Source of the DNA: Diplonema japonicum
Taxonomy: Eukaryota; Protista; Euglenozoa: Diplonemea
Length of the DNA stretch: 64,000 nt
Direction of reading: 5' to 3'
NCBI GenBank assembly: GCA_964019335.1
Contig: OZ025669.1
Span: 124,001 to 188,000, forward strand
Shown: positions 5,825-42,010 of the stretch, piece by piece
Layout of the letters: the number at the start of each line of letters is the position of its first letter
Position numbering within the stretch: position 1 is the first letter of the stretch
Notes under the pieces: model-generated
What the model saw: the letters and a program-made list of their open reading frames with translations, nothing else
Databases searched by the model: none
Told to the model about the DNA's origin: nothing
Program-made: the position numbers and the translations under genes

Positions 5825-7048
5825 CTAGTAGAGACCTACAACAGGGAGAATGGGGTAACAGTTGACATCCTTCGGAGCAAAGGCTTCAAGGAAGTCATCC
5901 AGCTGCTTACCGAAGTAGGTCATAAGAGAGTCAGGTACTGAAGGGAACACGTCCATGATGGGGATGAAGTACACCCACCTGTTGACCCCGTAAACCACAA
6001 AGTCGTCCCAGCACTCCTCGAAGGTGTAGTCCCCAAGATCAGCACCGCAGTCCTTCAGTGTATTGTAGTAGAGCTTTATGAGGTCCGGGAATTCCTTCGC
6101 GTGCTGGGGTATCTTCACGTCGGACACTACGAACTGCCCGAGGTCCCTCAGTGGGTTCCAAACACCTACATCACACCAATCGCACAACAAGATGCTGCCG
6201 TCCTTGTAGAACATGTTCGCTGCATGCCAGTCACCATGGCACAGTGTGAGGGGTCCCTTTTGCAGCGTCTGCACCATGTTCTCAAACGTCGATGCTGCAA
6301 GGGACTCCTCCATCACCTTCAGCACCCTGTCGGAGTACTGCACGCTCTTCCTTCGGTTCTTCCAAGCGCCCTGTACCATCGCCACAGACATGTCCCACCA
6401 CATCTTCCCCTTGCCCTGCAACACATCGACACCTTTCAGAAACTTGCAGTCAAATAAAGTCTTGTCACCCCAATGCTCTGCATGGAACTTCCCTGCTGTT
6501 AAAAAGATGGTCTTCAACACCTGACCTTCATCAGGGTGAGCGGACCTGTCGAACCCTTCAGGCAACCCCCAGATCTGGTTCCCGAGGAGGAGGTTCACCC
6601 CAACATGATCCTTCGACATGTCGCGCATCAGGATGCTGTACTTCCCGGTGAGGCTGTTGGAATAGGCATGGAAGCTTGGGAGGGCGTAGTCCTTGCAGGT
6701 GGTCTTCGCAAAGGTGTTGTAGAAGGACCCCTCGCGGTATCCACCGATGCCGATAGAGAAGGCCTTTCCCTTGGCGTCCCCCGAGGTCTTCAGCACCAAG
6801 ACCTTCTCCAGACCTGCCCTGTCCGTGTTGTAGGTCAAGTTCAGCTTGTGCATGGTGCCCACAAAGCCCCTTCCTCCGAAGGCGGACATCTCAAGCCCCG
6901 TCACCTCTTCCTCAGGTAGGAGTGCACCAGCCTCGCGAAGCATCGAAGTCAGCTTCTCAAGAGTGTAGTCGGCCTCCGCCGTGCTGGACAGCATGTGTCC
7001 TATCCACCCCGCTACTGTGTTGCAAGTGTTTACGAGCTTCGCTGACAT
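5825..7048 (-). CDS. APH/ecdysteroid-kinase-like (EcKL/choline kinase-like) phosphotransferase, 407 aa
   Basis: Motifs LVLKT, REGSFY, LCHGDWHAANM (Brenner motif), LLCDW and PLRDL. Confidence 0.85.
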   Translation of the reverse strand: MSAKLVNTCNTVAGWIGHMLSSTAEADYTLEKLTSMLREAGALLPEEEVTGLEMSAFGGRGFVGTMHKLNLTYNTDRAGLEKVLVLKTSGDAKGKAFSIGIGGYREGSFYNTFAKTTCKDYALPSFHAYSNSLTGKYSILMRDMSKDHVGVNLLLGNQIWGLPEGFDRSAHPDEGQVLKTIFLTAGKFHAEHWGDKTLFDCKFLKGVDVLQGKGKMWWDMSVAMVQGAWKNRRKSVQYSDRVLKVMEESLAASTFENMVQTLQKGPLTLCHGDWHAANMFYKDGSILLCDWCDVGVWNPLRDLGQFVVSDVKIPQHAKEFPDLIKLYYNTLKDCGADLGDYTFEECWDDFVVYGVNRWVYFIPIMDVFPSVPDSLMTYFGKQLDDFLEAFAPKDVNCYPILPVVGLY

Positions 7049-8040: not shown

Positions 8041-11000
8041 TCAATTGATTTTGGCTGCTGCACCCCATGCTTTGGCAGTGGTTCGGAGGTGTTTAATCGC
8101 CTGTTTGCTATCGTTTAACGCGTTTGCTGCGGCGTTGAGAGAGTTCCCATGGTCGAACCTGGCCCACTTCGAGACCTGTACCCGCCATTCCTTGTGGTGC
8201 AGAAGCAACTCGTACCACGCACGTGACACGTCGATCAGCATGGCCCTCGATGGGATCTGAACCAAAAAAAGCTCGAGGAGCGGACGGCGGCCGTCTTCAA
8301 CCTCTTCGTCGATAAAATCCCGCACAGAAAGCGGGCCCAGCTCCTCGCTTGCTCTGTTAGCCCGTTCCAAGGAAGAAGTCCCGAGAGACAGCTCCATCCA
8401 CTTCATGTGTAAATAACTCCTGAAAACATCCCCTAGTGACATCGAGTCCAGATCTTCTAACATCTCCTTGTACTTCGGCCAGAAGATCCTCGGGTTCCTG
8501 TTCACGTACGCCGTCTTGCCGTCTCGGAGCACGCAATGCTTCACCTTCTTCCAGTAAAATGTGATCTCCTTGAACCACGACAAGCTTGACAACGACGCAC
8601 GCATGCCAACAGGTGTGGACCATGCTGTGGTCTCGGGATCGTGTGCAATGCGCATGCTGAAGGTCAGCCTGTCCAGTGACTCACCGTGGACCTCTTCGAA
8701 CTTTGTGGTCATCACACCGATCAACAGGTTGAACAGCACCGCAATGATCACAACGTAGAACATGATGAAGAAGATCAGCGCGAACACCGGACGGACCGAC
8801 CGCATCGCCTCGAAGTCAAACTCACCCATTACCATGAACAGCAGCGCTTGGAACGCTTCGCTTGAGCTCTGCAAGGAATTGATGAGTTAAGAGAAACGGT
8901 CATACCCTGTACTTCTCAAGCACCATGCCGAAGACCACCCACGCGGACATCACAAAGCCGACCATGATCAGCAGGAACACGACAAGCAGGTTGAAGATCA
9001 GAGACGACGCCCTCCTCACCGTCTTGATGATGACGTTCATGTCGTGGTTCACCTCTAGGTAGAACATGACACGCAGGAAGATGAGGAGGATGTTGATCCC
9101 GTCGATTTGCTGCACCAGCACGCTCAGATCGCCCGCCTGTAGGTTTTTTCTTTTGCGTTTCGTTTCCACTTTCTATCATACCCTTTCAAAGTCCTGCGGG
9201 TACACGTCGGTGCAGAGAGGGTTGGACGCAGTGTTCCCCAACCAGATAAACCAGAACCTGAACACCCATGTCGCCACGATCATGAGGTACATGCAGGTGT
9301 CGATGAAGAACCACAGGTCCTGAAAGTACGTCTCCATCAAAGGGATCACAAGCTTCAGTCCTTTGCTTGAAAAGCACTTGCCTTTCTCGTTCCAGCTCGC
9401 GCAGGGGATAAAGTGTCCATGGAACCAGCTCGCTTCCCACCTCAATTGAGATTTCCTTGCCTGCCAAGCCCTATTGAACCTCTTCCATGAATTGCTAACT
9501 AGGTAAAAAAAAAACACCCAGATGAAGACGATCCCCAGCACGAATACAAATCCGCTCGCCTGCGTCTCCCACTGGAACAGACGGAAGGAGTTCAGCCTCT
9601 TGGATGCTACAAATGCGCCAGTGCTAGCGATTTCCACCATGAACTGCACTTTTGTCATGTGGCGACTGCTCTGGCTGTGCACGAAGAACTCTACAAGCAC
9701 AGCACGCGTCGCGATATCGATCCACTGATTGGCCTGCAGCATGTTGAGATGCTCTGTCGCCTCGCCCTCGGTCATGCTCACCGGCAGGAACGTCCCGTAC
9801 CCGTCGCAGCCGTAGTACAGCTTCCCGAAGGTTGTCGCTATGTTCCCTCTGTACCTCACAAGGAGCGACTCACCGTGCAGATCGCCGCAAGACCTGTACA
9901 CCCATGCCTGTGCTTCTTTCCAAAGCCCAAATGCAGTCAAGTTGCCTCCTTCCGCTTCTTGTATCCATTGTTCAAACTGCTCTCTTGAGGGGACCGTGAA
10001 AGCAGGCTCACTGGTCTTTCCCCCTGAACTGTCAACCTTGTAGATGACCTTCGCCGTGTCATCAGACTCAAGGGCACCAGCAGGCAGCGCGCTGTTCGGC
10101 TCCAAGTAGTACGCGTGGTTGCTGAAGGAGTCCTTGTCGTTCGACTCATCCCACGTGTTAAAGCACTGTGAGTGGTACTCGTCCTGCCGCACCTTCGTAT
10201 CGGTGCTCACTGCCTCTCGGATCCATGCCCCCCATCTATACTTGTTGGCTGTGACCCAGTCGCAAGCCACAGCAGAAGCATCACTAGTTTGCATTGCAGT
10301 GCTGAAGCTGGTGAGGTCACTTTGTGTGAATTCCATCCTGTACAGTAGTTCTTGGATGTCTTTGTCGAAGTCAGCGCCAGGAGGGTCCTTGAACACCTTG
10401 ATGAATGTCTGCGCCTGGTACTCGAAGGCGTTCAGGCTTATCCTAACCGGCTCGAGGCCGATAACGAGCGGCGATGACGAATAAGAGTAGAACAGTGCCG
10501 CCTTCCCATCGTTGTCCAGCTGACGCATCACTGCGTCGTAGCCTGTGCTGTTGTACAGGTCTAAAGCGTAGCTTCCCGCGACCAGCACACCAGCGGCGGT
10601 AAGCTTTGCCCCGAAATCAGTTCCCTGAACACCATAGATAACATTGCTGAAGGCACTGCTGACACCTGGTGCTTTGAGCGCCTCATGTCCAAGACGGGCG
10701 CATAACGGGCAAGACTCCACACCCGCCTTTGTCATGTACAGGCCTTCAGTAACATCGGGCAACAGCTTCGTGTTTATCGCTACATCGGCAGACTCAGACT
10801 TCCACTGCCCCACGGTCACCTCAGGTAGGTTGGGCTCATTTGAAATTGCAACGTTGAGCTCCTCAGTCGCTAAGATACGGAAGATCTCTGTCACAACAGC
10901 CGATGGCTCCCTTATTATAGGAGAAAGCCTGACGCCCCTGTCCGTTGTCTTGTTGCCGCTCTTGCATGCCCACACGATGGTTACGTTAGCAGGCAGTCTG

Positions 11001-12859
11001 CTCACTTCATTCGGGTTAGTAGGCACCCAGTCTGTGCTTGCTCGAGTGTCCCCATAAGCTCGACAAGTCTTCCCATCTTCGTTGGTCAACAGGTCATCGA
11101 GTTCCTTGCAGCTTCCAGACTTGGCTCTAAACTGCCGCACCTTGAAGCCACCAACTATCCGATTGAGATGATTCTGCACTACAGTGAAACCAGGGCTGCC
11201 GTCATCAGGGTACACATAGCCTAGCATGGGTCCCTTTATCCACTTCCAAAACTCTTCTTCGTTTGCTATCTCGTAAAACTTCCATGGGAAAAATTCGGTG
11301 GTTGCATCACCAACCTCCTCTTTCCCTATAGCCTCGTCTATGCTGAGGCCCAGGTAGAACCCTTTGTTGATATCAAGGTCATTGTGAAGATAGAAAGTGT
11401 ACACGAGCACCCACAAGATATACCAGAAGAAGTGGCGTTGCCTGCGGCCTGACTCGATCTTGTCCTCCACGTAGCTAATAGGGTACGACAGCCCCTCCAC
11501 GGGTTCCGACTGGCCCTTCATGCACGACTTGAAAAAAAGGCCCTTTTCGACAAGACCGTTAAACTTCTGGTTCAGGTTGGCCCACAGAGGGAAAAACGGC
11601 TCTTTCTTTACTTTGTTTCTAATCTCAACACCTGTGGCCGCCTTGTACGCTTCGCAGAATTCTGTCTCTGTGATGGCCCGTCTCTTCACAATGTTCATGA
11701 ACTTCTCTGTCAGGTCACCGCTGCAGTAAAGCTTCTTCAGTCTGTCTTCATATGCGTTCATTGCTGCGTCGCTCACGATGCTGGAGGCCACGTTGTTGGT
11801 GTCACTCCACACCTGGTCGAAGCTTACCCGCCTCTTTGGGTCGGAGCTCCACAGGTCGTCCATTGCCTGCCGCACTTTTTCGCTGATGCCGAACTCCAAG
11901 TACGGCAAGTTGTCTGTCTGGATGTACGTCCGCAGCATCTGCGTCTCTTTCGTCGGGTCCGATGTTGCACTTGACAGCCGCATCTTCAGTTTCTGCCCCA
12001 CGCGGGCAGAGTCAATGACCTTGCCTGTTTCGTCGCTGACAACAGACAAATCAGACAGGATGAATTCAACTGTAGACTCACCCACGAAGTGGCTGAGCAA
12101 TTCCGTCAGTTGGTTGGATTGAAGATCTACACTGCAACAGCGAGCCTGGTGCGCGTGGAGCTCGTCACGCATGGATATCTTCATTTCTTTCAGAAACGCC
12201 ACCCGCTTTTTCATGTTCACCTGCTTCCTCGTATCCCATGTATCCTCTGATTCCTGAACATCGTCTGCCTGTTCTACGTAGGTCAAGAAGGACTTCCACT
12301 CCGTCGCTGACACATTGCCGTCATTGTCTGTGTTCAATAGATTGAACACGTCACCCATCATGTTACTAATAATCTTCCGTCCCACCGAGTTCACGGCATC
12401 TTGTGTCTCTTGCTTCTGGATGACCACAAGCTCGTCATTGTCACACCACGTCGTATGCCTCGTCCTGCTCGTGGTGTCCTGTTGCTCGCCGTTGTTCATC
12501 TTATCTTGCTCGATAGCCCTCCAAGCTGCCATCCACTGACTCCTTGTGATGCCATCACCCTCCGACAATTTCAGCTTCTCCTCTAGTTCATTATGGTGCA
12601 CCTTCACGTAAGCCAGCACCCTTCTGAATGTGTGGTGCTCCAGGGGCGCGTTGTGACCGTACTTGTCAGGCAGCGGCTTGGTACGGTCCGCAATTGCCTT
12701 CAAACCTTGGTAAGCAATGTCTGTGCGGTACTCTTCATCCTCGTTCTCCTGCCCGACGTCTGTTGTCTTGTTTGAAAAGGGTCGGAACTTGGAGCTCCAC
12801 CACTCGGCCTCGGTGCCCTTGTCGTCGGGGGTGGGTGACTCGATGGTCACGGCCGGCAT
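8041..12859 (-). CDS. Polycystin-2 (TRPP)-like cation channel, about 1578 aa, with N-terminal EF-hand(s) and an inserted solute-binding domain; introns 9137-9181 and 8869-8905
   Basis: TOP-domain motifs NRIVGGFKVRQFR..GSC, CDGYG and NQWIDIATRAVLVEF. S5-pore-S6 region LLFMVMGEFDF...VLFNLLIGVM. EF-hand NTDNDGNVSATE. Confidence 0.9.
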
Positions 12860-13607: not shown

Positions 13608-15438
13608 TCAAACTGTAATAGGCTTCTTAGAAACATGATCAAAGATCATAGAAGGGGGTGGGCGGGCATGCTGCTTTGGGGTCTTCTTGCGAGGTGGGCT
13701 TATATCAGTTGGGGAGGACGTAAGGGCAGGCAGTGGGTGTTGCACAGCCTTCAGGGCGCATCGGCAGTAGGTGCCCACAGCGTGGAGCCATCGGCAGACC
13801 TGTCCAGCATCGACAGAGACTGTTGTAATGTTTGCGGGCTGGCACTTTGTATCGTTGAGGTACACCTCCATCTTGTTGAGGTACCCTCGGAGGTCTTCGT
13901 CAAGTGTGCTAATCGTGACGTTCGCAAGCCTCCCCATCATCTCCCCACTGCCCATCTTGTCGCGCGCTACAGACCATTTCAGGCTCGTATACCCCAGAAC
14001 CCTCATCAGGCACAGCACAGTCTGCGGTTTGTATTCACTTTATTTACATGATAATGCATACCCTTTCCACTAAACGCGGTGGCGACACCAATGCCCGTAG
14101 ATTCTGGAGGGCCTGCTGCCTGATTACTTCTAGTCCCACTGTGGGAGTCGGTGGGTCGAGGCATGGTGTCAATTCGCTATCTTCGTCCGCTAGAACCTGC
14201 GGAATCTGGGAAGACTTCTTACTCTGTGTTGACAAGATGGTGTCGATCTCTCGCTGCATCTGCTTGCTGCGGTGGAGGAGAGATGTGGTGTGTTCATCTG
14301 TGGCGGGCAGTGGTGCCGCTTCAGTATGCTGCTTTTTCATGGGGCTTGGCGTTGCCTGCACATTTGAACCCCTCCACATCCTGACAGGTGATGCACTCTC
14401 CTTCCGTCGTGTGAGCCGGTTTTCCATCGCCACCAAGTACTGTTGCTGCGGGCCGATCACACTCCCCGGTCTGGCTATCCGCATCCATGCTATTGCGGCC
14501 GCCGCGCTGAACCCATAATGCTTCATAAGGTAGCACCCTATCAGGGAACCTGTCCTCCCAAGACCTGCTTTGCAGTGTATCGCTACACCGCCTGGATTTC
14601 CTTCCACAAAGTCAAGAAACTTCGTCACAATGCTGTCAGTCGGGATGCTTCCATCCTTGTAGATGAGGTCGATGTGTTTAAAGCCTACTTCTGTGAACCC
14701 TCGCTTGTCGTATGTCTTTCGGCACAGCCTTACAATACCTGTTACCCCGCGCTCTCTGAATACTTTTGTGTAGTCCTCGGGCGACCAATATCGGAAGCCA
14801 TTAGCTGCCTCGGAGGAAGCTGCGTGCGGAGCACAGAATGCGATAAGCTTTCCGCATGCCTTGGCTGTCGGCGGCACTATCCAGTTCCAGTCCCCGTTGG
14901 CGGGCTGCTCAAAGTGCTCGTACTCCTCGCAGTCGAAGTTCCGCCAGTCTAGCCACCCCAGCGACACAGCATTGTGCAGCCCTTGCAGGCAGTGCATAAT
15001 TGTGCAATTGTAGGAAGACACCCCGCATGACACATCTCTGTATGGGAGGAACGGCGGGTAGCTGCTCGCGATGATCTCCAATGCTTCATGTGGGGTCTTC
15101 TCCAAGCACAATACAGCAAACGCTGCGATTAGGTACCCGGCGTTGGCCCTCTTGTGCCCGTCGTGCGATGAATAGAAGTACAGTTTCACACCGCTCAGCT
15201 GAGGAGCATGGAGGTACCTGTACGTTACCCTGCAGAACTTTACTAACATCGACAAGTTAAGCGGACCGAAGTCTGCCTCAAAGGGCTCGTACACCAGATC
15301 ATGATCCGCTGTCCAGAAGAAGTACTCATCGCTGCTTTTCGGGTGGCCTCGGAGCGACAAGAAGTACAACCTATCGGGAATTACAACACTGGCACGACCA
15401 AGAACAGAGGCGGGGACGATCTCACCAACCTCACCCAT
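13608..15438 (-). CDS. CDC14: Cdc14 dual-specificity phosphatase with C-terminal dynein MTBD-like domain, about 596 aa; intron 14022-14061
   Basis: Motifs YEPFEADFGPLN, KRANA, PYRD, NGDWNWIVP, intact HCKAGLGRTG and RPGSVIGPQQ. A 40-nt intron joins it in frame to ORF 13608-14018. Confidence 0.92.
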
Positions 15439-23800: not shown

Positions 23801-24676
23801 CGTGCGCTCAGGGGGGTTCACGTTGCAGGCAGCGGGGATCCCGTTGATGTCGACAGCATTGTTGCAACCGCCCGCACACGGCATGGGGGTGCCGCACATC
23901 CCGTTGCACACGGGGAACGAGATGCCGTCGTCGGAGAGCGCCACCGCGTAGTACAGCGTACCCCACCTGTCGGGGGCTGTCGTGAACTGGATGGTGCCGG
24001 TGCCGCCGTTGCCGGGGTTGCCGCCGTAAGCGCAGACAGGCGGCCCGTCCAAGGGGGGGTTGCAGCGGTCGTTCTGGCGGAAAAAAGCGGTGGGCCCTTG
24101 ATCCCAGAAATCGGAAGAGGACCAGGTAGGGCAGTTGCAAGCACTGCGGATGCATGGGTCGGTGTAGTCGTGAGGTTCGTGCTCTGTCGGGCAAGGGTTG
24201 TTCTCACCGGGGTGGCATCGGTGGTCGTAGTGGGGATGCTCAACACCGACAAGGCCGAACCCCCAGGAGAGGGCCTGCGTGGCGTAGCCGAGGTCGTCAG
24301 CGTTGCAGTCGGACACCTCGCATGCCCAGCGCTGGCCGTGGGGGGCTAGGTCACCGCTGTCTTCAGTTACCGTGACATGGCACTCGTTAGGCTGGCACCC
24401 TCCACTGCCCCAGCCCCTGCAGTAGTCAGGTGGGTTTGGGTTTAAACACTCATCTGGGAACAACTGGCTGTTCTTCTCACCATCAGACGGCCCGCCACTG
24501 CCCCACCCCCCTGGAGGGCCGTCCTTGCGGCAGCTCTCTTCGTTGTTCGGGGTCCACACTGGAGGGTGGTTCCCGACTATCTCGATGCCCCCTATCACTT
24601 GCGAGTGGGTGAGGACACTACCCTTTCGATTGCTGCCAGAGCCTAGGGCATACACTAGCAATGCTAGCGAAAGCAT
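17861..24676 (-). CDS. Giant type-I membrane surface protein, 2271 aa: signal peptide, Cys-rich head, about 15 cadherin/Ig-like repeats, Pro-rich stalk and TM helix
   Basis: N-terminal MLSLALLVYALG. Recurrent VND(A/P/K/Q)P(S/T)F...V.ED and DDGG..NGG.D motifs at roughly 110-130 aa spacing. TM segment WLIITLVLAGLLLLAALLLAAY. Single ORF. Confidence 0.88.
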   Translation of the reverse strand: MLSLALLVYALGSGSNRKGSVLTHSQVIGGIEIVGNHPPVWTPNNEESCRKDGPPGGWGSGGPSDGEKNSQLFPDECLNPNPPDYCRGWGSGGCQPNECHVTVTEDSGDLAPHGQRWACEVSDCNADDLGYATQALSWGFGLVGVEHPHYDHRCHPGENNPCPTEHEPHDYTDPCIRSACNCPTWSSSDFWDQGPTAFFRQNDRCNPPLDGPPVCAYGGNPGNGGTGTIQFTTAPDRWGTLYYAVALSDDGISFPVCNGMCGTPMPCAGGCNNAVDINGIPAACNVNPPERTCKVCKLTILPVNDCPVWDSVGDVTVAEDSTGTACMSSRQPSPPKGDAGDRRQYGVCHNNWATGIGAGGWFEWPYQNTWFDCVADNTLLFEAGYLPRVDGVAKLTNDTCVRTCRQDYCQSRRLMYTLAPDQCGSSTVTCTLHDDGGENDDGCDKSPPVTFEIVVQCVNDQPSFSTTRTNIRVDEDPCRTTGDNLATCHNGQWCEDNWATDIRVGPGNELDTYDFIVSVPPADEVYFTSLPTVDDNGRLCFGLAPHYNTQGRGPIPLTVVLRDSGGTANGGVDTSTAVAVALTIAPVNDVPTFSIPPAVVVKEDSGPHTATSFATDICLGDAAGPLCADFNERAPAAGMQTPTFTLTSTKPGLFLVQPAISPTGTLTFTPAADESGTASVDVTLCDNGTPEECSPPKTFVLTVLAVNDPPVVTIPSNVVVVEECNQPSPCSNGRYHSEPWATLSPGPANEDQSVAVVSVIPDDASLFRPDGQPQITANGGLTFTPAVDAHGTTTVRVVVKDNGGTLNGGGDTTEVTFVITILPENDLPVAIAGPDVVVDEDSGPFTKPAWAVMNPGGGEATSGQTLLAPVCVASSASLFASVPQLSVAGALQFTSAPDANGVSDVTCTVTDSLGASVDLTFKVTVNSVNDPPYYDFTVAMPLGLPECKDPSGTCRVSLPIATNISPGPADEVMQGLRFVVNVPLNARQLFPTRQQPYVDASGTLQVVMLRGAKVDGILPFTLSLIDDAGGDDTFTRDMPVVVATQNNAPSFVVGGDVSVLEDSNKQVFRQWASVFSAGEGEDYTQLTATCTADALIASISLDTTTGDLSVTPLPDLFGTTTAHCTVDDSSPVNCCFQQSFPVTVLPVNDKPTFTPNGSVTVWQDSGAFSEQWVTGVDPGPNEGTQSYVFGTEVVSGAELFVYPPAVDETGILTFEVASGVYGTANVRTRVKDDGGVLHGGVNLGDWVPFTIVVKRRNNAPSFVVGGQDTITVLEDAGRVEIPRWVSGATDGEPDVTQQLSYVITLRSGNPSILEGTPVVQDFSTGDLVFTVAPEKSGRLQYDVYLMDSGDGSLPNVNRSPAVVLTIDVLSVNDAPVFSTQGDVYTYEDEGIVVFPLWARGISPGPQEEAGQALMWEPATVTNSELFDALPSVTLKDGNLSFALAPNKHGVSQVSLCLTDDGGVAHNGIDRTCTVFRITVVAVNDALALLKGSNMTVLQTAGEVLVQGWVSVSLRPTDESTKTITSVQLTVEPPVPGLFTEQPTVNVGNGDLMFAVSRARHGVANVKVNAEDSAGGSYEEWFTITVLPAFIQPSFSPGDKITRVQDSPPYSMGWATNIDSGLPPGDTSTELSFSVVWTAGSNALFSAQPSITKEGVLQFKQAPGAHGEAWFDVSLRRPSDTSFLGTSNVSKLMISFQPVFSPPAFTFNSGVIRQQDTAGVVRLPGQVMVTMLSGEGRGYTCEGGTGLLRSFAIESDGTVVIETIAEKVGNATVGCVLNSTEGVSSVQEVVVEVYKVQTATIEGEGDVVVVEDTGDVTLQGWLRLPTTEVPSLTVTNMQLYEVQPTITKEGHLHFRPVSDAFGTSQLTVTLPGVKPYTFTVEVLSVNDPPSFKASSEVRVVSDIEVQWASDITSGGGGREADQEMQFVVEGLAGQVSVLKVPPVINKDGVLKVVVGDSPRSVTETYTVVLVDNGGRANGGADTSLPFKLQLAIDPPVGLPSFVGVAEVTVPSRTFAVLVASNISALQPSEFSVAPMTPFQSPPILSVTDGILRATLLNTWSAGTVVNLTIRIKDPRGEGSSAVTKLVVGYTVTVYEVLLPDGVSVAQLEEALKEDLGAEWGGMEVVKNEAVAGSTWRRVHITLNGGDQTMLEAFQDPMSRVRGLGVADVHVVSSPLPAPTRVPDGPLPVTFVPITLPPSPSDSSLPPWLIITLVLAGLLLLAALLLAAYKAFTPPPDQRPAELHSPEPEPELNESGTPPSNPLHSVFTPPAAH

Positions 24677-24699
24677 TGGGCTCTCCTCCTATGTGTGGG

Positions 24700-25436
24700 T
24701 GCGGTTTCTTTTTTTTCTTTTTAATGGAACGAAAAGCAAAAGGACTTTCGTGTAAGGGAGGTAGCAGAGAGGGGGAGATGAAAGGAAAAAAAAAAGGAAA
24801 AGAGAAAGAAAAAAAGAGAATGGAAGGGTGATAGTATAAAAAAAAAAAAAAAAAAAAGACGTGTAAGGCGTCTACAACTGGAGGAAGGGAAATCAGGGAT
24901 TTTCGTATTTGAGTTTTTTTTTTTTTTTTTTTTTTTTCTTACAAAAAAAGTATCTTTGAAAAAGAGAAGAGAAAAAAAAAAAGATACATTTTAAATATCC
25001 CCCCGTATGGTTCAGAAGTAGAGTAGAGGAGAGAAAAAGAAATAGAAATAATAATTAAAAAAAAAAAAGTTATTGGGGAGAGAACAGGGAATAAAAAACA
25101 AGGGGAACACGGGCAGGCACTCAAAGATCACTCAAAAAAAAAGGGGGGGCGAGGCGATAAAACACATAACAAATACCATCGTGTGTACTGACTGGGGAAA
25201 AAAAAATAAAAATAAAATTTCGCTTCATTGAACTTGCTAAGGCAGACTTAATCTTTTTTTTTTTTCTTCTTTCCCCCCCCTCATTCAGTTCCCTTTTGAA
25301 AAAAAGGGGACAACTGTGTTTCGTAAAGAGAAAAAAAAAAAAAAGAGAGAGAGAGACTAGTTGGCAGTTGGGCTACCTAACTTCTTTAAGGAACTACCAG
25401 ATTTTTGCACAGAAAACAAACGGGCAGACCACCAAG

Positions 25437-25470
<34 letters not shown>

Positions 25471-28400
25471 AAGGCTTGCGTACTGAGCGACTCCTGCAAA
25501 CGTAGCAAGGCAAGTCATCAAAAAAAAGGGGGGGAACACCTTTACAGGTACCTGAGGGGCTTGCAGATGCAGTATATACACACATAAAAAGAAAAAGCAA
25601 CTAATGTCAGAGATACCAAAAGGGAGAGAAAAAAAATATATATATATGTAGACCAACAAAAATATTTTGATTGTTTTTTTTAACGTCAAGGTTGCCAAGT
25701 TGACTGCGCTCAGCACGAATCATCAAACAACAAAAAAAAAAGGGGGGAGTAAATAAAATAAAATAAAATAAAAAAAAGTCAGTACTTAGCATTTGTTTGT
25801 GCACACAAAGGGGGGGGAAAAAAATAGGAAGTGGGGGGAGGAAAAGCGGACGTGGCTTACAACAAAGAAACATCCCGATAACGGGAGGGGAGTAGAAGAA
25901 GCTAATCACACACATGGGGGTGGCTTGAGCCCACATTATAAAAAGAAATTAAAAAAAAAAAAACCGCAAAACACACGATACGTATTTTCTTTTTTTTTGG
26001 GGGGGTTCTTTGTATTTGTAAAAAAAAAAAAAAAATCCCTTTTTTTTTTTCCTTTCACCGTTTTACGGAAAAGGGTGCGCTAGGTTACACGGACGTACAA
26101 GGGCCACCCCCCCCCAAAAAAAAGGGAGGGGGGAGGGAGGGAAAAAAAAAAAAAAAAAAAAAAAAAAATAAAAAAAAAAACGCCAAGTCATGAAAATGCA
26201 ACAATGAATTTCTTTTCTGAGCCTTTTTTTTTCCCGAAGAAAAATCCTTTTTTTTTTTGTTGAAAAAAAAAAAAAAAAAAAAAAAACCAGAGACCCTCCT
26301 TTCCCCCCTCAACTTAAACAATAAAAAAATACCAGTTTGTAATTAGGGGACACATCAGTGCAAGCTGATGACTTGCGCCTACTAGCCATTCCTCATTCAA
26401 GGAGAATAATCAGCATCACCTCCAAAGACGGTGTTTGTTGGAAGGCGAATTACTGAGAAAGATTTACCTTTTAAATTACCGGTGATATTAATTCTTTTTC
26501 TTCTTCTTCTTTTCTTTTTTTCGAGTTAAAAAAAAAAAAAAAAAAACTCATTTTTTTTTTATAGCAAAAGCACCTTCCGCCGATTCCTTATCAGAGCATC
26601 TCCCCCCTTTTTTTTTCTCTTTTTTTCTTTTTTCTGTTCCCCTCCCCCGCTCCTTTTCAAACAATTTCGTACCGATTTTCTCCGACAAATCAGGTGATTA
26701 TAATACTGTCTGGTGCGAACAGCATAAAGGGGAATGTTGTTGTGTAGTTGGGGAAAAAATTAGGGTGTACAGGGAAATTAAAAAAAAAAAAAAAAAACTG
26801 CTTCAAACACTCGGATTTTTCTTTTTTTGGCTTGGAAGGGTAATGGGGGTGAAAGGGAAAAGATAGCAAAAAGGTGGAGGTTTAAAAAAAAAAAATTAAA
26901 AAAGGGGGCCTTTTGGTCATTTTCTGTTTTTTTTTATTGTTTTTTTTTTTTAGATATTCATTTACCATTCCAAGAGGGGAAAATAATAGGTAAGTGATGG
27001 GAAAGGAAGTGGGGGAGCAAAGAAAAAAAAGAGGAAAATGGGGGTGGGGGGGGGAAATTATGAAAAAAAAACCTGGATTTGAACAAATTTCATGAGTTTT
27101 TTTTTTCCCTTCTTTTTTTGACATAAAAACTCCCTTTAACTATTAGGTTTCTTCGTGCAACGTTCAGCTGGAACTGATACGTTTCACCCCTCCGTTTTTT
27201 TTTCTTTAAAGTTCTTTTAAAGATTTTACCCCCCCCCCAACCCTTCTTTCTCGCCCGAGTAACTACTTTTGTTTTATTTACAAACAAAATCGGAAGAGAA
27301 GAGATAGAGGGGGGAAAAAAAGGGGGGGGGGGAGGGTGAGTACTGTAGAAATAAGTTAGTTTCTTCTTCTTCTTTTTCCCCCCCCCCCTTCTTGAAACTT
27401 GTAATATAACTGCTATAACTTTTGTATTTCTTTTTTCTTAAAAAAAAATAAAGAAAGAATCGTCTGACCATCGAGCTTTGGAGAAAAAAGAGAGAGGGAC
27501 ACAGTAGTGGAAAAATATTGATTGTGGAGAATAAGGATTCACCAAACAAAAAGATTAAGTGTCGAATTAAACTACACAAGAATCTTCATTGTTGATATCT
27601 ACGGCAGAAGATGGAGGACCTTTTTGTTTCTTTTTTAAAAAAACTAGTGTCCTGATTCCTTCTTCCCCCCCCCCCCCCCCCCCCTCTTTCCTCTCCCCTT
27701 TGCCATTCTTTTTACCTGGGTTTTTTTTTCAGGAAAAAAAAAAAAAAACACCAGTGTATTCACACCATTGGATGCAATTCTTTCTTCTTTTTTTTTGTAT
27801 ACTTTTCTTTTTTTTTTATGGTTTCTCTCTCTTTGGGTTCTCCCTCCTTTTTTTTTTTTTTTCCCTCTCCAGGTCTACAGGTTTACCCCTTCTTTTTTTT
27901 TTATTTGCCAGAGGGAGAGAAAGAGAATAAAAAGAAAACTTCTTTTTTTTTGGTTGGATGTGTACGGTGTCCCAGAAAGGTTTCTCTACTTTCTTTCCCA
28001 TGGTCATGCTCGTATTCGTATTCTTTTATTGTTTTTTTTTTTTTTTTTTTTTTCTTTTTATGCAGCCTTCTTTTTTATTCTTTTTTTTATATTCTTTTGC
28101 GATCAGAAGAGGGGAAAAGATAAATAATGAAAGGATGTAAAAAGAGAGATCAAAGTAACAATGTGTTAATAATTCGCAAGAATAAAAAAAAAAAAAGAAA
28201 AAAAAAAAAAAAAAAAAAAAAAAACCTCGATAAAACTTCAGTGTGCAGTGGGCTGCTCACAGCTTTAGAAGAATTTCACACCAGGTCACCTTTCTGGGAT
28301 TGCTGTCCGGTGCCTGCGGTGGCGTGCTAGGTAGAGGGCTTGGCTCGAGGAGAAACAAAAAAAAAATCATGAGGGGGAGGAAGGATGTTAAAAAAAAAAA

Positions 28401-29176
28401 AAAATGCAACCAAGAATTCCACCCCAGCACCAACAAATGTACAAATGTTGCTGCTGGTAGTGCGACCTCAGGCTGAACGTTAGGGGAGGAGGCAAAAAAA
28501 AAAAAGGGAGGGAAATAAAAAACTTCTTTTTTTGTTTATCCCGAAAACCTTTCTTTTTTTTTCACCCCCCCTCTTCTCTGTGCAGAGAGAGGGGGTGTGC
28601 TATTTAATAAAAAAAAGAGAGAGAGAGAACTAAAATAAAAAAATATAAAAGATACCAGTCTCACATTATTTTCTGTTTTTTTTTTTTTTTTTTTTTTTTC
28701 GTGTGAGAAATAAAAATTTTGGTTGGAGGTATGAATACCTCCATTGTTCTTTTTTTTTTTGTTGTGGAAAAGGGGTGTGTTGTTTCATGGGGAATAAAAT
28801 AAAATAAAAATCAAATAAAAAGAAAAGAACTTTTTTTTTTTTTCTGAAAAGAAATCATGGAAGAAAAAAAAAAAATACCAAACAAGGATTACAGCCACAT
28901 AAGTGAAAAAAAATATAATAAAGGCGTGCGTGCGTGGAGGAACAACTAAGAAAAAAGCTCGAAGATGTGGGCAGTAAATGTTCTTAGACTGTCCACCCCT
29001 CCAAAAAAATTAAAGAAGAAAAAAAAAAAAAAAAAAAAACTGTCTGAGCAACACTCAGTAGGCAGTCTCCCGGTGCTATCGAGAGGGCGAACGATGGCTT
29101 AGGAAAAAAAAAAAAAAAAAAAAAATTTTCGTCGTTTTTTTTTTTTTTTTTTTTTTTTTTTTGAAATAGAAACGTT

Positions 29177-29212
<36 letters not shown>

Positions 29213-29414
29213 AGGGGGACTGACCGCTGTGTGTGCACGGGCCAAGGGTGGAAATCTGGAGAAGAGAGTACATAGCCCGTAACACATTGCAATCGTTCCC
29301 TTTTAGTTAGACAAGTCAAAGCATCATTCTTGCAAGAAAAAAAAATGGCCACAGAAGAGGGATAAGAGGGCCAAAGTGAAGACAAAACGGGGGAATCCGA
29401 AATATGACAAAAGT

Positions 29415-29476
<62 letters not shown>

Positions 29477-30746
29477 CCACCTCCTCTTGGTCTAGCCAGA
29501 CCGACTCCACCCAGCTAGGCTGAGTGGAGCCTTCGTGCCCTTGGAAGTGTGTTGAGACGTTCGTGCTTTCGTGTCGGCCTCTTTTAAGTGAGTCTTTCTT
29601 CTCGTTCTTCTTTTCTCCCCCACATCCCCGCTTTCTTTTTTTTTTTTTTTTTTTTGGTAATTATAAAACAAGCCTGCAAGAGAATGATGTCATGATACCT
29701 TGATCCTTTTTTTTTTTTTTCTCCCTTCTTTTTTTAAAATATTTTCTCAAACCCAGCACACCAAAAGGGTGGGAAAAAAAAAAAACAAAAAAAAAAAAGA
29801 GAAAAAAAAAAAGAGAAAATCGTTGAATTATATAGAACAAGGCCTATAAACAAAATACACCTTAATTTCTTTTTTTTTTTAAATTTCTTCGTTCTTTTTT
29901 TTTTTTGTGTGTGATTAAAATCATGAAGTCGTGGGGCGGCACAACACAAGGCTTAAAGTGAAAAAAAACCTTTTTTTTCCCAACCCCTTTCCCACCCATT
30001 CCCCCCTTTTTTTTGCTTCAGTTCTTTTTCCAATAAGAAGAAGAGAGAAACAAAAAAAAAAGGGGGGAAAGAGGTAGAAAATCTGTTTTTCTTTTTGACA
30101 ACAAACAAAAACAAAAATAACAGGTTTCTATCAACTTTAGTCAGAGACCCTTTGCTTGTTGTCTTCTTTTTTTTTTCACCTTTTTTTATTATCGGGGGAA
30201 AAAAAAAAAAATATGGGGAAAGAAAAAAAAAGGGGGGGAAGGAGGTCGGATCACAATAGGCAAGCTATCACGTCTATCCCAAAATGTGACCATCCCCCCC
30301 CTCCCCCTCCCCTTTCTTTTTTTATTTTTTGAAAATATTTTTTTTTTTCTTCTTCTTTTTTCTTCGTTAGTTGTTGTTGATGTTCATTTTGGTGGATTTC
30401 ACGAAATTAGAGAGAAAGAGGGAGTTAATATTTATTTCGTTCTAAGGGGGAAAAGCGTAAAAGCCGAAATGCAAAAAGAGGAACCCCTCTTTCAACTTTA
30501 TTTTATTTCAGATGACCTACTACATAGTGTGCCACAACAGTAGGAAAACACAAAACATGGTTATATAAGTAACAAGTAACGCTGGGGAATAAAAAGGCAA
30601 AAAAAAAAAAAAAAAAAAAAAAGGATAACGCTGGCAATAGGACTAAAAAAAAAAAAAAAAAAAAATCGTAGGAGAAGAAAAAAGAAGAACTTCTTTGAAA
30701 ACTCTTCCCTTTCCTCCCCTCCCCTGAGAATTTGCGCGTTTTCTCT

Positions 30747-30777
<31 letters not shown>

Positions 30778-30914
30778 AAACAAAAAATATTTCTTTTTTT
30801 TTCTTTCTTTCCTTCTCTTTTTATGTTTCTCTTTCTTCGTGTGAATTGTCTGGGAAGGGGGTGGGAGGGGGGGGGGGGGGGGGGGGTTCAACTTTTTTTT
30901 TAAAAAAAAGCTTG

Positions 30915-30949
<35 letters not shown>

Positions 30950-31030
30950 TCGTTCAGTATAAGAGGGGTGTGAGTGTGATGAAATAGAAAAAAAAAAAAA
31001 AGAAACATCTTTTTTTTTTTTTTTTTTTCC
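24700..31030. repeat. 6.3-kb non-coding spacer (possible long 3' UTR) saturated with A/T/G/C homopolymer runs
   Basis: Dozens of runs, up to T55 at 29418-29472. ORFs here are poly-K/F artefacts. Confidence 0.85.
29411..29593 (-). mobile_element. Short poly(A)-tailed retroposon insertion (SINE or 5'-truncated LINE) with 8-bp target-site duplication
   Basis: AAGTGAGT at 29411-29418 and 29586-29593 flanks a ~110-nt body plus an A55 tail on the minus strand. Two adjacent hairpins (29503-29531, 29489-29502) lie just before the tail. Confidence 0.65.
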
Positions 31031-38434: not shown

Positions 38435-40120
38435 TTAGCGAAGCGAATCAGGATCCCGATCGGGGACATGGTGCCATGTCCCTGCCATGGGCGTGGTGGG
38501 GAGGAAGACGGTTTCCGTAAAAGCAGGGCGCTGAAAAGGGTAGCAGGCAGGCATCGTGCTGCCCACCATTCGTGTCGACGGCACATGCGGGGCTTCAACA
38601 AGCTCAGAACAAATCCGCACAAGATACTGCTCAGCTGGCACCTCAGCTGCTGTTTCGCTTGCCTGATCCTTCCGGCCGACAGCCTCCTCGTAAGCTGTTT
38701 GCACTGCCGCCTCGACCGTTCCCGTGCACAGCGTAGCTACACTCTTAACCGCGATGCTGCTTGTTTCTAGTATATGTTCCGGCAACGAACTTTTCTCGGG
38801 CTTGGACTCGGGTTTGGGCTCGGACTCGGACTCGGACTCAGCTTGCGGCACCGCCCCAGTGTGTACGTGTACTTCTTCTCCCTCTCCGCTCGATGTGTCC
38901 CCCAAGCCCATGCCCCTGCGGAAGAGCTGCACCATTCTAGGTGATGGCGAGACACGTAAGATGGGTGCAAGGGTAGAAGACGCTGCTGGCAGAGGCAGTG
39001 ACTGCGGTATGTGGTGCGTAGGAGGCGTAGGTATGAACTCTTCACCCCCATCCACGGCTGCAACCTCCGCGCTGCTAGCTCCGTCCGTCATCTCGTCCAC
39101 CTCGCTCTCTTCTTCAAAGACTTCGTGTGCTAGGTAGTCGTACGTTGCGCTCCCCGACACATGGTGCCGCGTCGCCCTGTCCTCCCCGAACATGCGGAGG
39201 TAGTCGTTCCCCTCCTGCACACGCTGTGCGAGGAGCGCAAGCTGTTCGTCTTTTCCACACGACACATCAGATGCAGTAGAGATGGACATGCCGACAGTGC
39301 TGGACACTGACGACACATCAGTCATCTCCTCCTCCTCCTCCTCTTCTTCCTCCTCCTTTGCAGAGGTCCCTTCCGATGAAAACTCTGAGAACAACAGTGT
39401 ATCCTCCTCCTCCTCCTCGCTGTCCGGAATATTGCACAACATCATGCCCCACATACCAGGGGTGCTGACAAGGAGCAGGAAGGTGGTGTACCCAAGCCAA
39501 GCAGTGGTGTGGTCCGGAGAAGGGGCGTAGATATAAGGAACGGATGGAGTGAGCGGCGGGCTGTCAGGCTCGGGATTCTTATCTTCTTCCTCCTCCTCCT
39601 CTTCTTCTTCTTCCTCTTCCCCATCGTCAAAGCATGCTGAGGCATCTTTTGAAGCATCGAGGGTTAAATCGCTTCTGATGTTGCTGTCTGTGCCTGCCTT
39701 GAGGACGTTGCTCGTGATGTGTGAGTAGATGGAGGTGATGATGGTGACGAGCTCGACGACGTCAGGCGGCTTGACAAGGATGTCAGGGGGCTTTGCTATC
39801 TTGATTCCCACCCACCCACCGTTGGCCTTGCTCAGCCCCACCTTCACCACATCTGTTATTTTGACGACACGTGTCAGCGTGGCGTCTGGGTTGGCCACAC
39901 ACAGTGAGGTGGGGCCTATCAAGATCACTTTTCTCTTCGGGAAGAAGGCATTTGCCCTTCTCTCCTGCACATTTTTAAGGTAGTACAATGCCGGCTTCCC
40001 AGCCTTTCCATGAAAATACCGTTTCTCAAAAGGACCATACAACTCTTTATCCAAATGCTTCTCGTTAATAAATGGAGGCAGCCCGAGACCAGACTCCTCT
40101 TTGGGCCTTTGTCTCAGCAT
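38435..40120 (-). CDS. TH1/PH-like domain protein with acidic low-complexity tail, 561 aa
   Basis: RKVILIGPTSLCVANP...GWVGIKI...DILVKP is paralogous to the neighbouring gene. Poly-Glu tracts follow. Confidence 0.7.
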   Translation of the reverse strand: MLRQRPKEESGLGLPPFINEKHLDKELYGPFEKRYFHGKAGKPALYYLKNVQERRANAFFPKRKVILIGPTSLCVANPDATLTRVVKITDVVKVGLSKANGGWVGIKIAKPPDILVKPPDVVELVTIITSIYSHITSNVLKAGTDSNIRSDLTLDASKDASACFDDGEEEEEEEEEEEEDKNPEPDSPPLTPSVPYIYAPSPDHTTAWLGYTTFLLLVSTPGMWGMMLCNIPDSEEEEEDTLLFSEFSSEGTSAKEEEEEEEEEEMTDVSSVSSTVGMSISTASDVSCGKDEQLALLAQRVQEGNDYLRMFGEDRATRHHVSGSATYDYLAHEVFEEESEVDEMTDGASSAEVAAVDGGEEFIPTPPTHHIPQSLPLPAASSTLAPILRVSPSPRMVQLFRRGMGLGDTSSGEGEEVHVHTGAVPQAESESESEPKPESKPEKSSLPEHILETSSIAVKSVATLCTGTVEAAVQTAYEEAVGRKDQASETAAEVPAEQYLVRICSELVEAPHVPSTRMVGSTMPACYPFQRPAFTETVFLPTTPMAGTWHHVPDRDPDSLR

Positions 40121-42010
40121 CTGTCATTTTTTTCTTTTCCTGCACTGGTAGGGCGGGCCATATTAAGAACAACAATGAAGAAGAAAAAAAAAAACTTTAA
40201 AAGGAAAAAAAAAAAAGGGTGAGCAGGGTGGGTGGTAACTAATTTTCTTTTTTTTTTCTCGTTGATCTTCCGTTTCCTCTCAGTCCCCCCCCTTGTTTTC
40301 CCTGCAGTGGTGTTAACCGCTGGGCGATGGCGGGGGCGATAAGTCAGAAAGACGCCTTTTTCTTTTCTTTTTTTTAAAAGTATTTTCTATTTCTTTCTTC
40401 TTCTTCTTCTTTTTTGTTTCCCTGGCTCGTGCTTCTTTAATAAATGACTGCGATTTATAATCGCGAAAAAAAAAAAGGGGGAAAAAAAAAGAAGAAGAAA
40501 CAGGCCAGGGGTCTTCATTTCCATTCCCTCTCTCACCCTTACTATGCTTCTGTTGATTACTCTTTCTTTTTTTTTCTCTCTCTCTCCTTAAAAATCATAT
40601 TGAAACATAATCCTTTGTATTCTGTTTCTTTTTTTTTCCCTAGTGGGTCAAAAAAAAGTGACCTGTGGGCCAGTGGCGGCATAAGGGTATGGGGAGAAGA
40701 ATAGTTAAAAAAAGAAAGTATGGGGGGGGGGGGGGGGTACAGGGGGGGTAAGGTGGTGCTTTTCTTTTCTCTACTCGGCATTATACTCTCTTTCAAAAGC
40801 ACGTTGCAATTCTCCGCTTTTTTTTTTTTTGCGAATTTCAGCAGGGAAAAAAAATGCTAATATTTTTATTTAGATTTCATTCATTTTCTTTTTTTTTTTG
40901 TTCCCCCTTTTTCTTTTAGGAAGGTGGGGGGGGGGGGGGGTGGCTGGAGTCTACTTTTTCTTCTTTTTTTCCCATCCCCCCAAAAAAAAAAGAAAAAAAA
41001 AAACGGAATACACAGAAAGGCCATACCATAAATATTTATAAAAATACAAAACAAAGAGGAAGAGGGAAAAAAAAAAAGTGATAAATTCAATAAAATCTGA
41101 GTTCGCTGTGGGAGGGGGTCTAGATTAAAAGGAAAAAGAAAAAGCAGTGCGTAGTGGGCGACAGGAAAACGACACCTCTCCACATGTGTGTAAAAAGGGG
41201 AACTGGCTGTTTTCCCCTTTTGTTCAGACGAGTCGATAACTCAGTCTTGCAAGAAGAAAAAAAAAAAAGAAAAAAAAAAGATGGACGGCAACCTTTGTTA
41301 AGCTACAACCAACCCAACCTTGAAGAAAATAGAAAAAAAAAACACAGAAGAATGAACGGAAAAAAAAGTAGCCGTTCTTCTCCCCTCCCCCGCACCTTTA
41401 GATGTTGACGGGAGCATTTGAAGAATTTAACCCCATAAAAGATCGCTTTTTTATTTTCCCCTTTTAAAAAAACACCCTAGAGCGTGTGAACGTGACGAAA
41501 AAAAAAAAAAAAAAAAAAGTCAATTAAAAAAATCTCTTGATAAAGTTAAAAGATACAGGCGCGCCTTTTGTCTCCTTCATTTCTCTTTCTCTTCTTTTTC
41601 TTGTCTCTTCTGTCGCCCTCGAAGCAGCCCGCACGTTTCCGTTCACCAAAAAGAAAAGGGGGGTGGGAGGGCTGCAGAGGGGGAAGGGGGGGATCCTGCT
41701 CATATCGAGCATGAGCAGTTCCTTCTTTTAGCCTCAAAAAAAAAAGATTTATATAAATATATACTAGTTAATCGCTTTCATTTTCTTTTTTGTTTGTGCA
41801 CAAAAAGCGGTATTTTACCTAATAAAATAGCTCATTACGCTGCCATCAACTAGTTTTTTTTTCTTTTTATTAAAGTCTCGACAACAATATATTAAAACAA
41901 AAAATGGGGGGGGGGGAAACAGAAGTGAAAAGCAAAGCCGAGAATATAACAGAAATAACAGAGAAGAATGAGGGAAAGGGGCAATGGAAGAAAGAAAGAA
42001 AGAAAAAAAA

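Follow-up and report, generated by a model that had tools for sequence, protein, structure and literature searches.

A polycystin-2-like channel gene of Diplonema japonicum with a predicted OpuAC-type solute-binding domain at finger 1 of its TOP domain

The channel gene and its inserted segment

The window analyzed here is a 64-kb stretch of the Diplonema japonicum genome (64,000 nucleotides; GenBank assembly GCA_964019335.1, contig OZ025669.1, positions 124,001 to 188,000). It carries on its minus strand, at window positions 8041–12859, a gene delineated from open reading frames (ORFs), Pfam matches and splice sites; it encodes a polycystin-2-like (TRPP) channel into which a solute-binding domain is inserted. 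All features of this gene are given in window positions on the minus strand. The ORFs and the splice sites read from the DNA define three exons of 1226, 77 and 275 codons. The insert-bearing ORF (9176–12859) runs for 1227 codons with no interrupting stop, and two short ORFs, 9169–8900 and 8874–8041, carry on the channel protein after it. Exon 1 (9182–12859, residues 1–1226) encodes the cytosolic N-terminal region, S1, the TOP domain with the insert, S2 and S3. Exon 2 (8906–9136, 77 residues) encodes S4 and S5 as judged from Pfam PKD_channel, an alignment to TRPML1 and hydropathy. Exon 3 (8041–8868, 275 residues and the stop codon) encodes the pore helix and filter region (LLFMVMGEFDFEAM), S6 and the cytosolic C-terminal tail, as judged from Pfam and hydropathy. 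The two introns, of 45 nucleotides (9137–9181) and 37 nucleotides (8869–8905), are both of the GT-AG type and both read GTATGA...CAG. The predicted junctions, ...YPQDFER/AGDLSVLVQQ and ...LEKYR/SSSEAFQ, agree with the transcriptome protein P0001/P0002 of D. ambulator (...YPQDYER/AADLS and ...ERYR/SSSES in P0001), in which the exon order is the same. This protein (EukProt EP01059) is the closest relative, with 59% identity over residues 533–1226. Judged by its sequence, the gene product is a diplonemid polycystin-2-like (TRPP) channel subunit of ~1578 residues.

The exons were searched one by one, not as a joined protein. The Pfam Polycystin_dom profile (TOP, PF20519) matched with an E-value of 1.6e-19 and 70.7 bits (cut-off 23.6) in two separate stretches. 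PKD_channel (PF08016) scored 29.5 bits in exon 2 (cut-off 22.4) and 21.3 bits in exon 3, where it covers the last 57 positions of the profile and where Ion_trans (PF00520) scored 27 bits (cut-off 25); the spliced D. ambulator orthologue reached 53.8 bits with PKD_channel. A HMMER search of residues 501–1227 against the Protein Data Bank (PDB) matched only PKD2, PKD2L1 and PKD1L3 structures (best E-value 1.2e-13), in agreement with the polycystin-2-like identity proposed in the initial annotation, a model's reading of the DNA without database searches. The candidate S1 helix (residues 477–493, 11381–11431) is a hydrophobic stretch that immediately precedes the Polycystin domain, and its assignment follows from this position only. 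Hydropathy locates the helices S2, S3, S4, S5 and S6, among them S2 at residues 1103–1121 (9497–9553), into which the PKD2 alignment extends, and S3 at residues 1182–1207 (9239–9316). Exon 2 can be aligned to the S4–S5 region of TRPML1, and in the pore an acidic residue follows the filter glycine (MGE). The first half of the TOP domain (11063–11371), defined by the PKD2 alignment and the first PF20519 stretch, ends with the finger-1 pair C584 and C599. The second half (residues 981–1100, 9560–9919) holds the best PF20519 stretch (982–1094) and the PKD2 alignment at the E-value given above.

The two halves of the TOP domain are separated by a large insert, for which six peptides had been quoted. 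All six are present in the 1227-codon ORF: RQFRAKSGSC (residues 575–584), SAVVTEIFRILATEEL (653–668), AALFYSYSSSPLV (787–799), LLYRMEFTQSDL (838–849), the C-terminal helix AVACDWVTANKYRWGAWI (863–880) and QCFNTWDESNDKDSF (898–912). Exactly 313 residues (585–897) lie between the first and the last of these, where the initial annotation had estimated about 320. Human PKD2 has at this site only the short C331...C344 loop, according to HMMER alignments with PDB sequences. HMMER pairs SGSC-KELDDLLTNEDGKT-C (C584, C599) with NGSC-SIPQDLRDEIKE-C of PKD2 (C331, C344), and similarity to PKD2 restarts at residue 981; counted from PKD2, the extra material comprises ~380 residues (~600–980). An alternative partner of C584 is C899, in a CFNTW...DSF motif, and the structural models are of low confidence at the joints of the insert. 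The extra material would thus be either 313 residues inside the finger-1 hairpin (C584–C899) or ~380 residues right after the hairpin, and either way it lies at finger 1.

Three segments can be distinguished. A linker from finger 1 to the binding domain (residues 600–637, 10949–11062) contains a family-conserved CRAxGDTRxxTxW motif and C632, and is modeled with low confidence. The predicted OpuAC/ProX/DmpX-type solute-binding domain follows at residues 638–883 (10211–10948), assigned from model Z scores, Foldseek, the family profile and Pfam matches of orthologues; the span first proposed for it, 10215–10945, corresponds to residues 639–882 and matches the structural core. Mapped from the hinges of DmpX, lobe I comprises residues ~638–700 and 820–883, and lobe II residues ~703–815. 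The element after the binding domain (residues 884–980, 9920–10210) consists of a long helix, the C899 motif CFNTWDESNDKDSF, which is similar to CYDVY... of PKD2, a β-hairpin and two helices. This element is conserved across the diplonemid family (PKxIYxxDxSG...APTREExxxW...AExGNL) and has no counterpart in PKD2. Like the remaining TOP domain, the insert is predicted to be extracellular, a location that suits the ectodomain's nine cysteines and four N-x-S/T sequons. It is not a chance feature, because it lies in one unbroken ORF and is 53% identical in the D. ambulator transcript.

Predicted fold, relatives and age of the insert

An AlphaFold2 model of residues 581–915 was built from an eight-sequence alignment. 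The mean predicted local distance difference test (pLDDT) score of this model is 68, rising to 70–93 in the core, which spans model residues 58–303 (residues 638–883 of the protein). The 13 best Foldseek matches are all OpuAC-type proteins, namely DmpX, ProX, OpuAC, TmoX, ChoX and OpuA (E-value 4.7e-7). Superposition by VIA-align on DmpX with bound dimethylsulfoniopropionate (DMSP; PDB accession number 7yle) resulted in a Z score of 19.5 and a root-mean-square deviation of 2.9 Å over 232 residues. Other OpuAC-type proteins align with Z scores of 17–19 and occupy, with DmpX, all of the first 46 entries, whereas amino-acid-binding proteins and the ligand-binding domain of ionotropic glutamate receptors (iGluRs) reach only ~8.4. 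The fold check proposed with the initial annotation was run on this model, which exhibits a bilobed class-II periplasmic-binding-protein fold with two hinge crossings. A second model, of lower confidence, covers the whole ectodomain (residues 497–1105) and was searched against 48,161 chains without Foldseek. Its middle part (residues 639–887) matches ProX and DmpX with a Z score of 15.6, and iGluR ligand-binding domains score 6.3–6.6 in this wide search. The flanks match the TOP domains of PKD2 and PKD1L3 (7d7f chain A, from the PKD1L3/PKD2L1 complex) with Z scores of 8.1–8.2 and 24–28% sequence identity.

An exhaustive phmmer search of 1.84 billion representative proteins yielded eight matches to the insert, seven of them true and all seven long polycystins. 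These are the proteins of D. ambulator (E-value 5e-94), a D. japonicum paralog (9e-24), two Sulcionema specki proteins (P0004, 7.5e-16; P0005, 1.4e-12), Namystynia karyoxenos, and two environmental proteins from ENA (P0007 and P0008), so that five of the seven are named diplonemid transcripts. The eighth match, P0006, is a leucine-rich-repeat protein and was discarded as a false positive. Four relatives exceed the Pfam cut-off of 21.2 bits for OpuAC (PF04069), with 37.7, 26.5, 40.1 and 54.1 bits (P0004, P0005, P0007 and P0009), and in each of them OpuAC sits between the Polycystin halves, upstream of PKD_channel. At E ≤ 1, OpuAC is matched by all of the eight aligned inserts except that of the window. 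The profile of the eight inserts found RnDmpX (7yle, E-value 5.3e-11), ChoX (2reg, 2.1e-9) and TmoX (4xz6, 3.8e-7) in the PDB, with weaker matches to OpuA and OpuAC. The C-terminal helix AVACDWVTANKYRWGAWI aligns to the OpuAC family helix aaxWLxxNxxxWxxWl. The orthologue matches, the family profile and the window model (Z 17–19.5) thereby agree with the ProX/OpuAC-type class-II domain that had been proposed within the TOP domain.

Several results weigh against the explanation as a whole, a fusion that serves as a ligand sensor. Taken alone, the window insert has no match among PDB chains, nor, with the threshold relaxed to E ≤ 10, among Pfam and NCBIfam families; it falls below the PF04069 gathering cut-off and, by its sequence, is a strongly diverged OpuAC copy. 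A six-frame scan of the D. japonicum genome with Pfam OpuAC gave no match. The model of the ectodomain, TOP domain and insert together, has a pLDDT of only 59.9, and the protein collections searched yielded no transcript from the window gene. Nonetheless, because sequence homology through the relatives is joined by structure prediction, we are highly confident that a complete bilobed domain of the OpuAC/ProX/ChoX/TmoX/DmpX class breaks up the TOP domain, either at the finger-1 hairpin or immediately after it.

A second polycystin with an inserted domain is encoded in the same genome (G000:C13:643987-644988, minus strand; locus L002), its insert being ~26–31% identical to that of the window. 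The ORF of this paralog, here called the C13 paralog, is identical at 1215 of 1216 positions to the EukProt D. japonicum transcript P0003, and it has no intron at the site of intron 1 of the window gene. As both D. japonicum copies stay below the Pfam cut-off for OpuAC, automated annotation would miss the insert in this genome. The fusion occurs in Diplonema, Sulcionema and the hemistasiid Namystynia, with at least two paralog lineages in the tree. Transcripts retain the insert in the paralog from this genome and in four other species, which answers the concern, raised at the outset, that it might be spliced out. No stand-alone relative of 172–548 residues was found by word-index searches with the insert and the family alignment as queries, and neither these nor phmmer detected a relative outside diplonemid-type polycystins. 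A JGI metagenome scan with the window and D. ambulator sequences gave 45 matched pattern sites, none of which was confirmed. The sequences show the fusion to be old, duplicated, present in Diplonemidae and Namystynia, and kept in mRNAs. The closest bacterial matches, DmpX, TmoX and ChoX, are alphaproteobacterial proteins of marine type, which hints at a bacterial origin of the insert.

The N-terminal cytosolic region (residues 1–476, 11432–12859) is conserved in D. ambulator and Sulcionema and contains no Pfam domain apart from a weak EF-hand-like loop, NTDNDGNVSATE (residues 169–193, 12281–12355). This loop matches EF-hand_6 with an E-value of 0.0022 and 18 bits, against a cut-off of 25, and sub-threshold EF-hand-like matches occur at the homologous place in P0002 (D. 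ambulator) and P0004 (Sulcionema). The cytosolic EF-hand of the initial annotation is thus plausible but weak, as a single N-terminal loop that recurs in relatives and stays below the cut-off. A C-terminal EF-hand of the PKD2 type was sought with Pfam in exon 3, and none was present.

The large ORFs of the window all lie on one strand, an arrangement consistent with the published account of polycistronic gene clusters in diplonemids (PMC10161547). Downstream of the channel gene, an EcKL/APH-type small-molecule kinase-like protein is encoded at 5825–7048 (minus strand; Pfam EcKL, E-value 5.5e-10), and upstream a Cdc14-like dual-specificity phosphatase at 14044–15438 (minus strand; DSPn, E-value 1.9e-45, and DSPc). 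A mitochondrial carrier and an RRM protein are also among the neighbors, and none of these links the gene to an ABC importer. The GC content is 0.33–0.45 at window positions 24001–31000 and 40001–42000 and ~0.52–0.55 elsewhere in the window; the low-GC stretches may separate gene clusters as spacers rich in repeats or in AT.

Candidate pocket, proposed gating and rival explanations

The pocket of DmpX is formed by Trp35, Thr64 and Trp84 of lobe I and by Glu113, Trp152, Ala153, Tyr200 and Trp202 of lobe II, with hinges at residues 106–111 and 244–247; Glu113 contacts DMSP through water, and onium-binding aromatic boxes consist of three or four aromatic residues (PMC10030565). The chain numbering in the profile alignment is consistent with that publication (PMC10030565). 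Trp84, Glu113 and Tyr200 of DmpX are identical in the window protein. The first corresponds to W686 (10802–10804), a tryptophan in six of the seven family members that have this column. The second corresponds to E705 (10745–10747), kept only in the window protein and D. ambulator. Tyr200 and Trp202 map to Y791-S-Y793 on the pocket strand of lobe II (10481–10489), where profile position 233 is aromatic in all eight members and position 235 in five of eight. Of the remaining positions, Thr64 is replaced by N677 and Ala153 by Q745. The position of Y708 is aromatic in all eight members. A CPLC motif (C717–C720, 10700–10711) starts a lobe-II helix just after Y708; both cysteines are invariant in the eight members, the proline is present in six of the eight inserts, and DmpX has no cysteines there. 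The CPxC pair might form a structural disulfide, serve as a redox switch or bind a metal.

The case for a working pocket is weakened by several observations. The mapping from DmpX to the window protein was made through the family profile alignment, not on superposed coordinates, and the insert model has low confidence where W686 is located. Two cage tryptophans of DmpX are lost: Trp35 is replaced by R650 (10910–10912) and Trp152 by V744, with Y742 nearby. The Trp35 position is aromatic in three of the eight members and the Trp152 position in none. Pocket positions vary among the paralogs, and the C13 paralog keeps the first cage tryptophan and lacks the second, the W686 equivalent, which is the opposite of the window copy. 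Furthermore, ~11–17 residues of lobe I are missing just before the cage tryptophan in the window protein, D. ambulator and the C13 paralog, as judged against the Sulcionema, Namystynia and environmental copies. The tree, with moderate support, suggests that this loss was independent in the two D. japonicum paralogs. The predicted binding domain is thus complete in fold and reduced in its aromatic box. Since a box of this kind needs no more than three or four aromatic residues (PMC10030565), onium binding is still plausible, and we put the retention of small-ligand binding at about an even chance.

The same observations bear on the strongest alternative, that the binding domain is a relic that binds no small ligand. 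It would then extend the TOP lid structurally, for instance by acting as a spacer, by aiding assembly or trafficking, or by offering another protein or prey surfaces a place to dock, and the channel would be gated otherwise, for example by voltage, Ca2+ or mechanics. The failure of both D. japonicum copies to pass Pfam OpuAC as single sequences would be expected of such a relic, as would the deletion in lobe I, the replacement of the Trp35 equivalent in five of the eight members, the absence of any aromatic residue at the Trp152 position and the pocket differences among paralogs. The window protein and D. ambulator agree at eight of ten pocket positions against a background of 53%, an excess that is not significant (binomial estimate, p ~0.08). 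However, every paralog has preserved the whole bilobed fold during a long stretch of evolution, there is hardly any variation in the tryptophan at profile position 120 or in the aromatic residues at positions 144 and 233, and known family members function with three-residue aromatic boxes (PMC10030565). On balance a relic is a serious but rather unlikely explanation. We give slight preference to the view that the fusion is genuine and lets the channel sense ligands outside the cell.

Subunits of the TOP ring contact each other through finger 1 in PKD2 and PKD2L1, and gating requires both this finger and its disulfide; when the C331–C344 disulfide is broken by mutation or external reductants, the voltage dependence shifts by more than 87 mV and the channel is silenced (PMC7229662). 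Because finger 1 is critical for gating in these human channels, a clamshell placed there is well positioned to influence gating. As a ligand sensor, the domain would bind a small methylated onium, either a quaternary ammonium or a tertiary sulfonium compound such as glycine betaine, choline, trimethylamine N-oxide (TMAO), DMSP or a similar molecule. Binding would involve the reduced aromatic box of W686, Y791 and Y793 together with the polar residues E705 and N677, with R650 in place of a cage tryptophan. Closure of lobe II on lobe I would then alter the seating of finger 1 and the four-fold TOP ring on the channel, and this would shift the gating of the cation pore, which is probably Ca2+-permeant. 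OpuAC-type proteins have both ends in lobe I (lobes and hinges in PMC10030565). As a consequence, closure would not pull on the linkers as it does in iGluRs, and coupling would require the mobile lobe II to touch adjacent TOP or binding domains. Ligand-modulated gating is a tentative proposal that we consider somewhat less probable than its absence. A marine heterotrophic flagellate might plausibly use such a channel to sense osmolytes that algae or prey release. The most specific version, a natural ligand-gated polycystin in which cues of the DMSP, betaine, TMAO or choline type open a flagellar or surface Ca2+-permeant TRPP channel through finger 1, is unlikely as it stands.

Alternatively, the domain might bind its ligand without gating the pore, capturing osmolytes at the cell or flagellar surface or signaling to a partner protein, possibly a polycystin-1-like receptor. 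The position of both termini in lobe I, by which closure of the clamshell exerts no direct pull on the TOP domain, is compatible with this explanation. Nevertheless, the domain is inserted at the gating-critical finger 1, no ABC importer components are linked to the gene among the neighbors inspected, and there is no evidence for a partner, which makes binding without gating improbable. An artefact is extremely improbable: although the window gene's own transcript was not recovered, an unrecognized intron is ruled out by the presence of the insert in transcripts of relatives (the D. ambulator, Sulcionema specki, Namystynia karyoxenos and D. japonicum paralog proteins share the architecture), and assembly chimerism or bacterial contamination by the single open frame of 1227 codons without a stop, the near-identity of the paralog's genomic ORF to its transcript, and a GC content of the region like that of its surroundings.

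Comparison with known systems

Full-text literature searches found no paper in which a periplasmic or OpuAC-type binding domain is paired with polycystins or TRP channels. Polycystins and betaine are both absent from the D. papillatum genome paper, searches for polycystin together with diplonemid matched only papers on the radiolarian Polycystinea, and those for diplonemid together with DMSP returned none with the polycystin–OpuAC architecture. The parts are known, and the combination of a polycystin with an OpuAC-type domain appears to be undescribed. How polycystins open, and what part the TOP domain plays in gating, is a long-standing question with medical weight: more than 80% of the PKD2 missense variants responsible for autosomal dominant polycystic kidney disease lie in the TOP domain (PMC7229662). 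If the inserted module is functional, it would provide a polycystin with a testable chemical agonist and a defined system for studies of TOP gating. Diplonemids are among the ocean's most abundant heterotrophic flagellates. If the gating proposal is true, the channel would be the first natural ligand-gated polycystin, a direct ionotropic chemoreceptor of diplonemids for algal or prey cues, and a second, independent binding-protein-gated cation channel besides the iGluRs.

The diplonemid channel shares with human PKD2 and PKD2L1 the TOP domain between S1 and S2, the finger-1 Cys-x(13-15)-Cys pattern and the six-transmembrane PKD_channel pore, although the identity of the TOP domains is only ~24–28%. 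In contrast to these channels it adds a binding domain of ~300–380 residues and a family-specific element at finger 1. Its N-terminal cytosolic region of ~476 residues carries one EF-hand-like loop, whereas PKD2 has a C-terminal EF-hand.

The predicted domain shares the bilobed fold of RnDmpX (7yle, DMSP), TmoX (4xz6, TMAO), ChoX (2reg, choline) and ProX (1r9l, 3tmg), with Z scores of 17–19.5. It also shares with the OpuAC-type proteins the C-terminal A-x-x-W-L/V-x-x-N-x-x-x-W-x-x-W helix and the equivalents of Trp84, Tyr200 and Glu113. It differs from them in the exchange of Trp35 for arginine and Trp152 for valine, in the missing lobe-I segment and in the added CPxC motif and further cysteines, and the sequence identity is 11–15%. 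Whereas the OpuAC-type periplasmic proteins serve ABC importers, the diplonemid domain is embedded in the ectodomain of a eukaryotic channel with no ABC transporter. The Lactococcus lactis OpuA (7ahc/7ahd) offers an analogy, since there too an OpuAC-type domain is tethered to a membrane protein, to which it delivers a ligand-dependent signal. However, the domain of OpuA is attached end-on to the ABC permease and hands over substrate, while the diplonemid domain lies inside a loop of a channel ectodomain and no transport is implied.

In concept, the closest analogs are the iGluRs, GluR0 and the plant glutamate receptor-like channels (GLRs), in which a periplasmic-binding-protein clamshell sits on a tetrameric cation channel. 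The parallel with iGluRs drawn in the initial annotation is a loose one, apt for the clamshell on a cation channel and inapt for a binding domain that is contiguous and has both ends in lobe I. The iGluRs belong to another channel superfamily and use another class of binding protein, as reflected in their Z scores of 6.3–8.4 against the insert models. Their clamshell is split by the pore segments and its closure pulls the gate, whereas the predicted diplonemid clamshell is contiguous (residues 638–883) and is combined with a PKD_channel pore.

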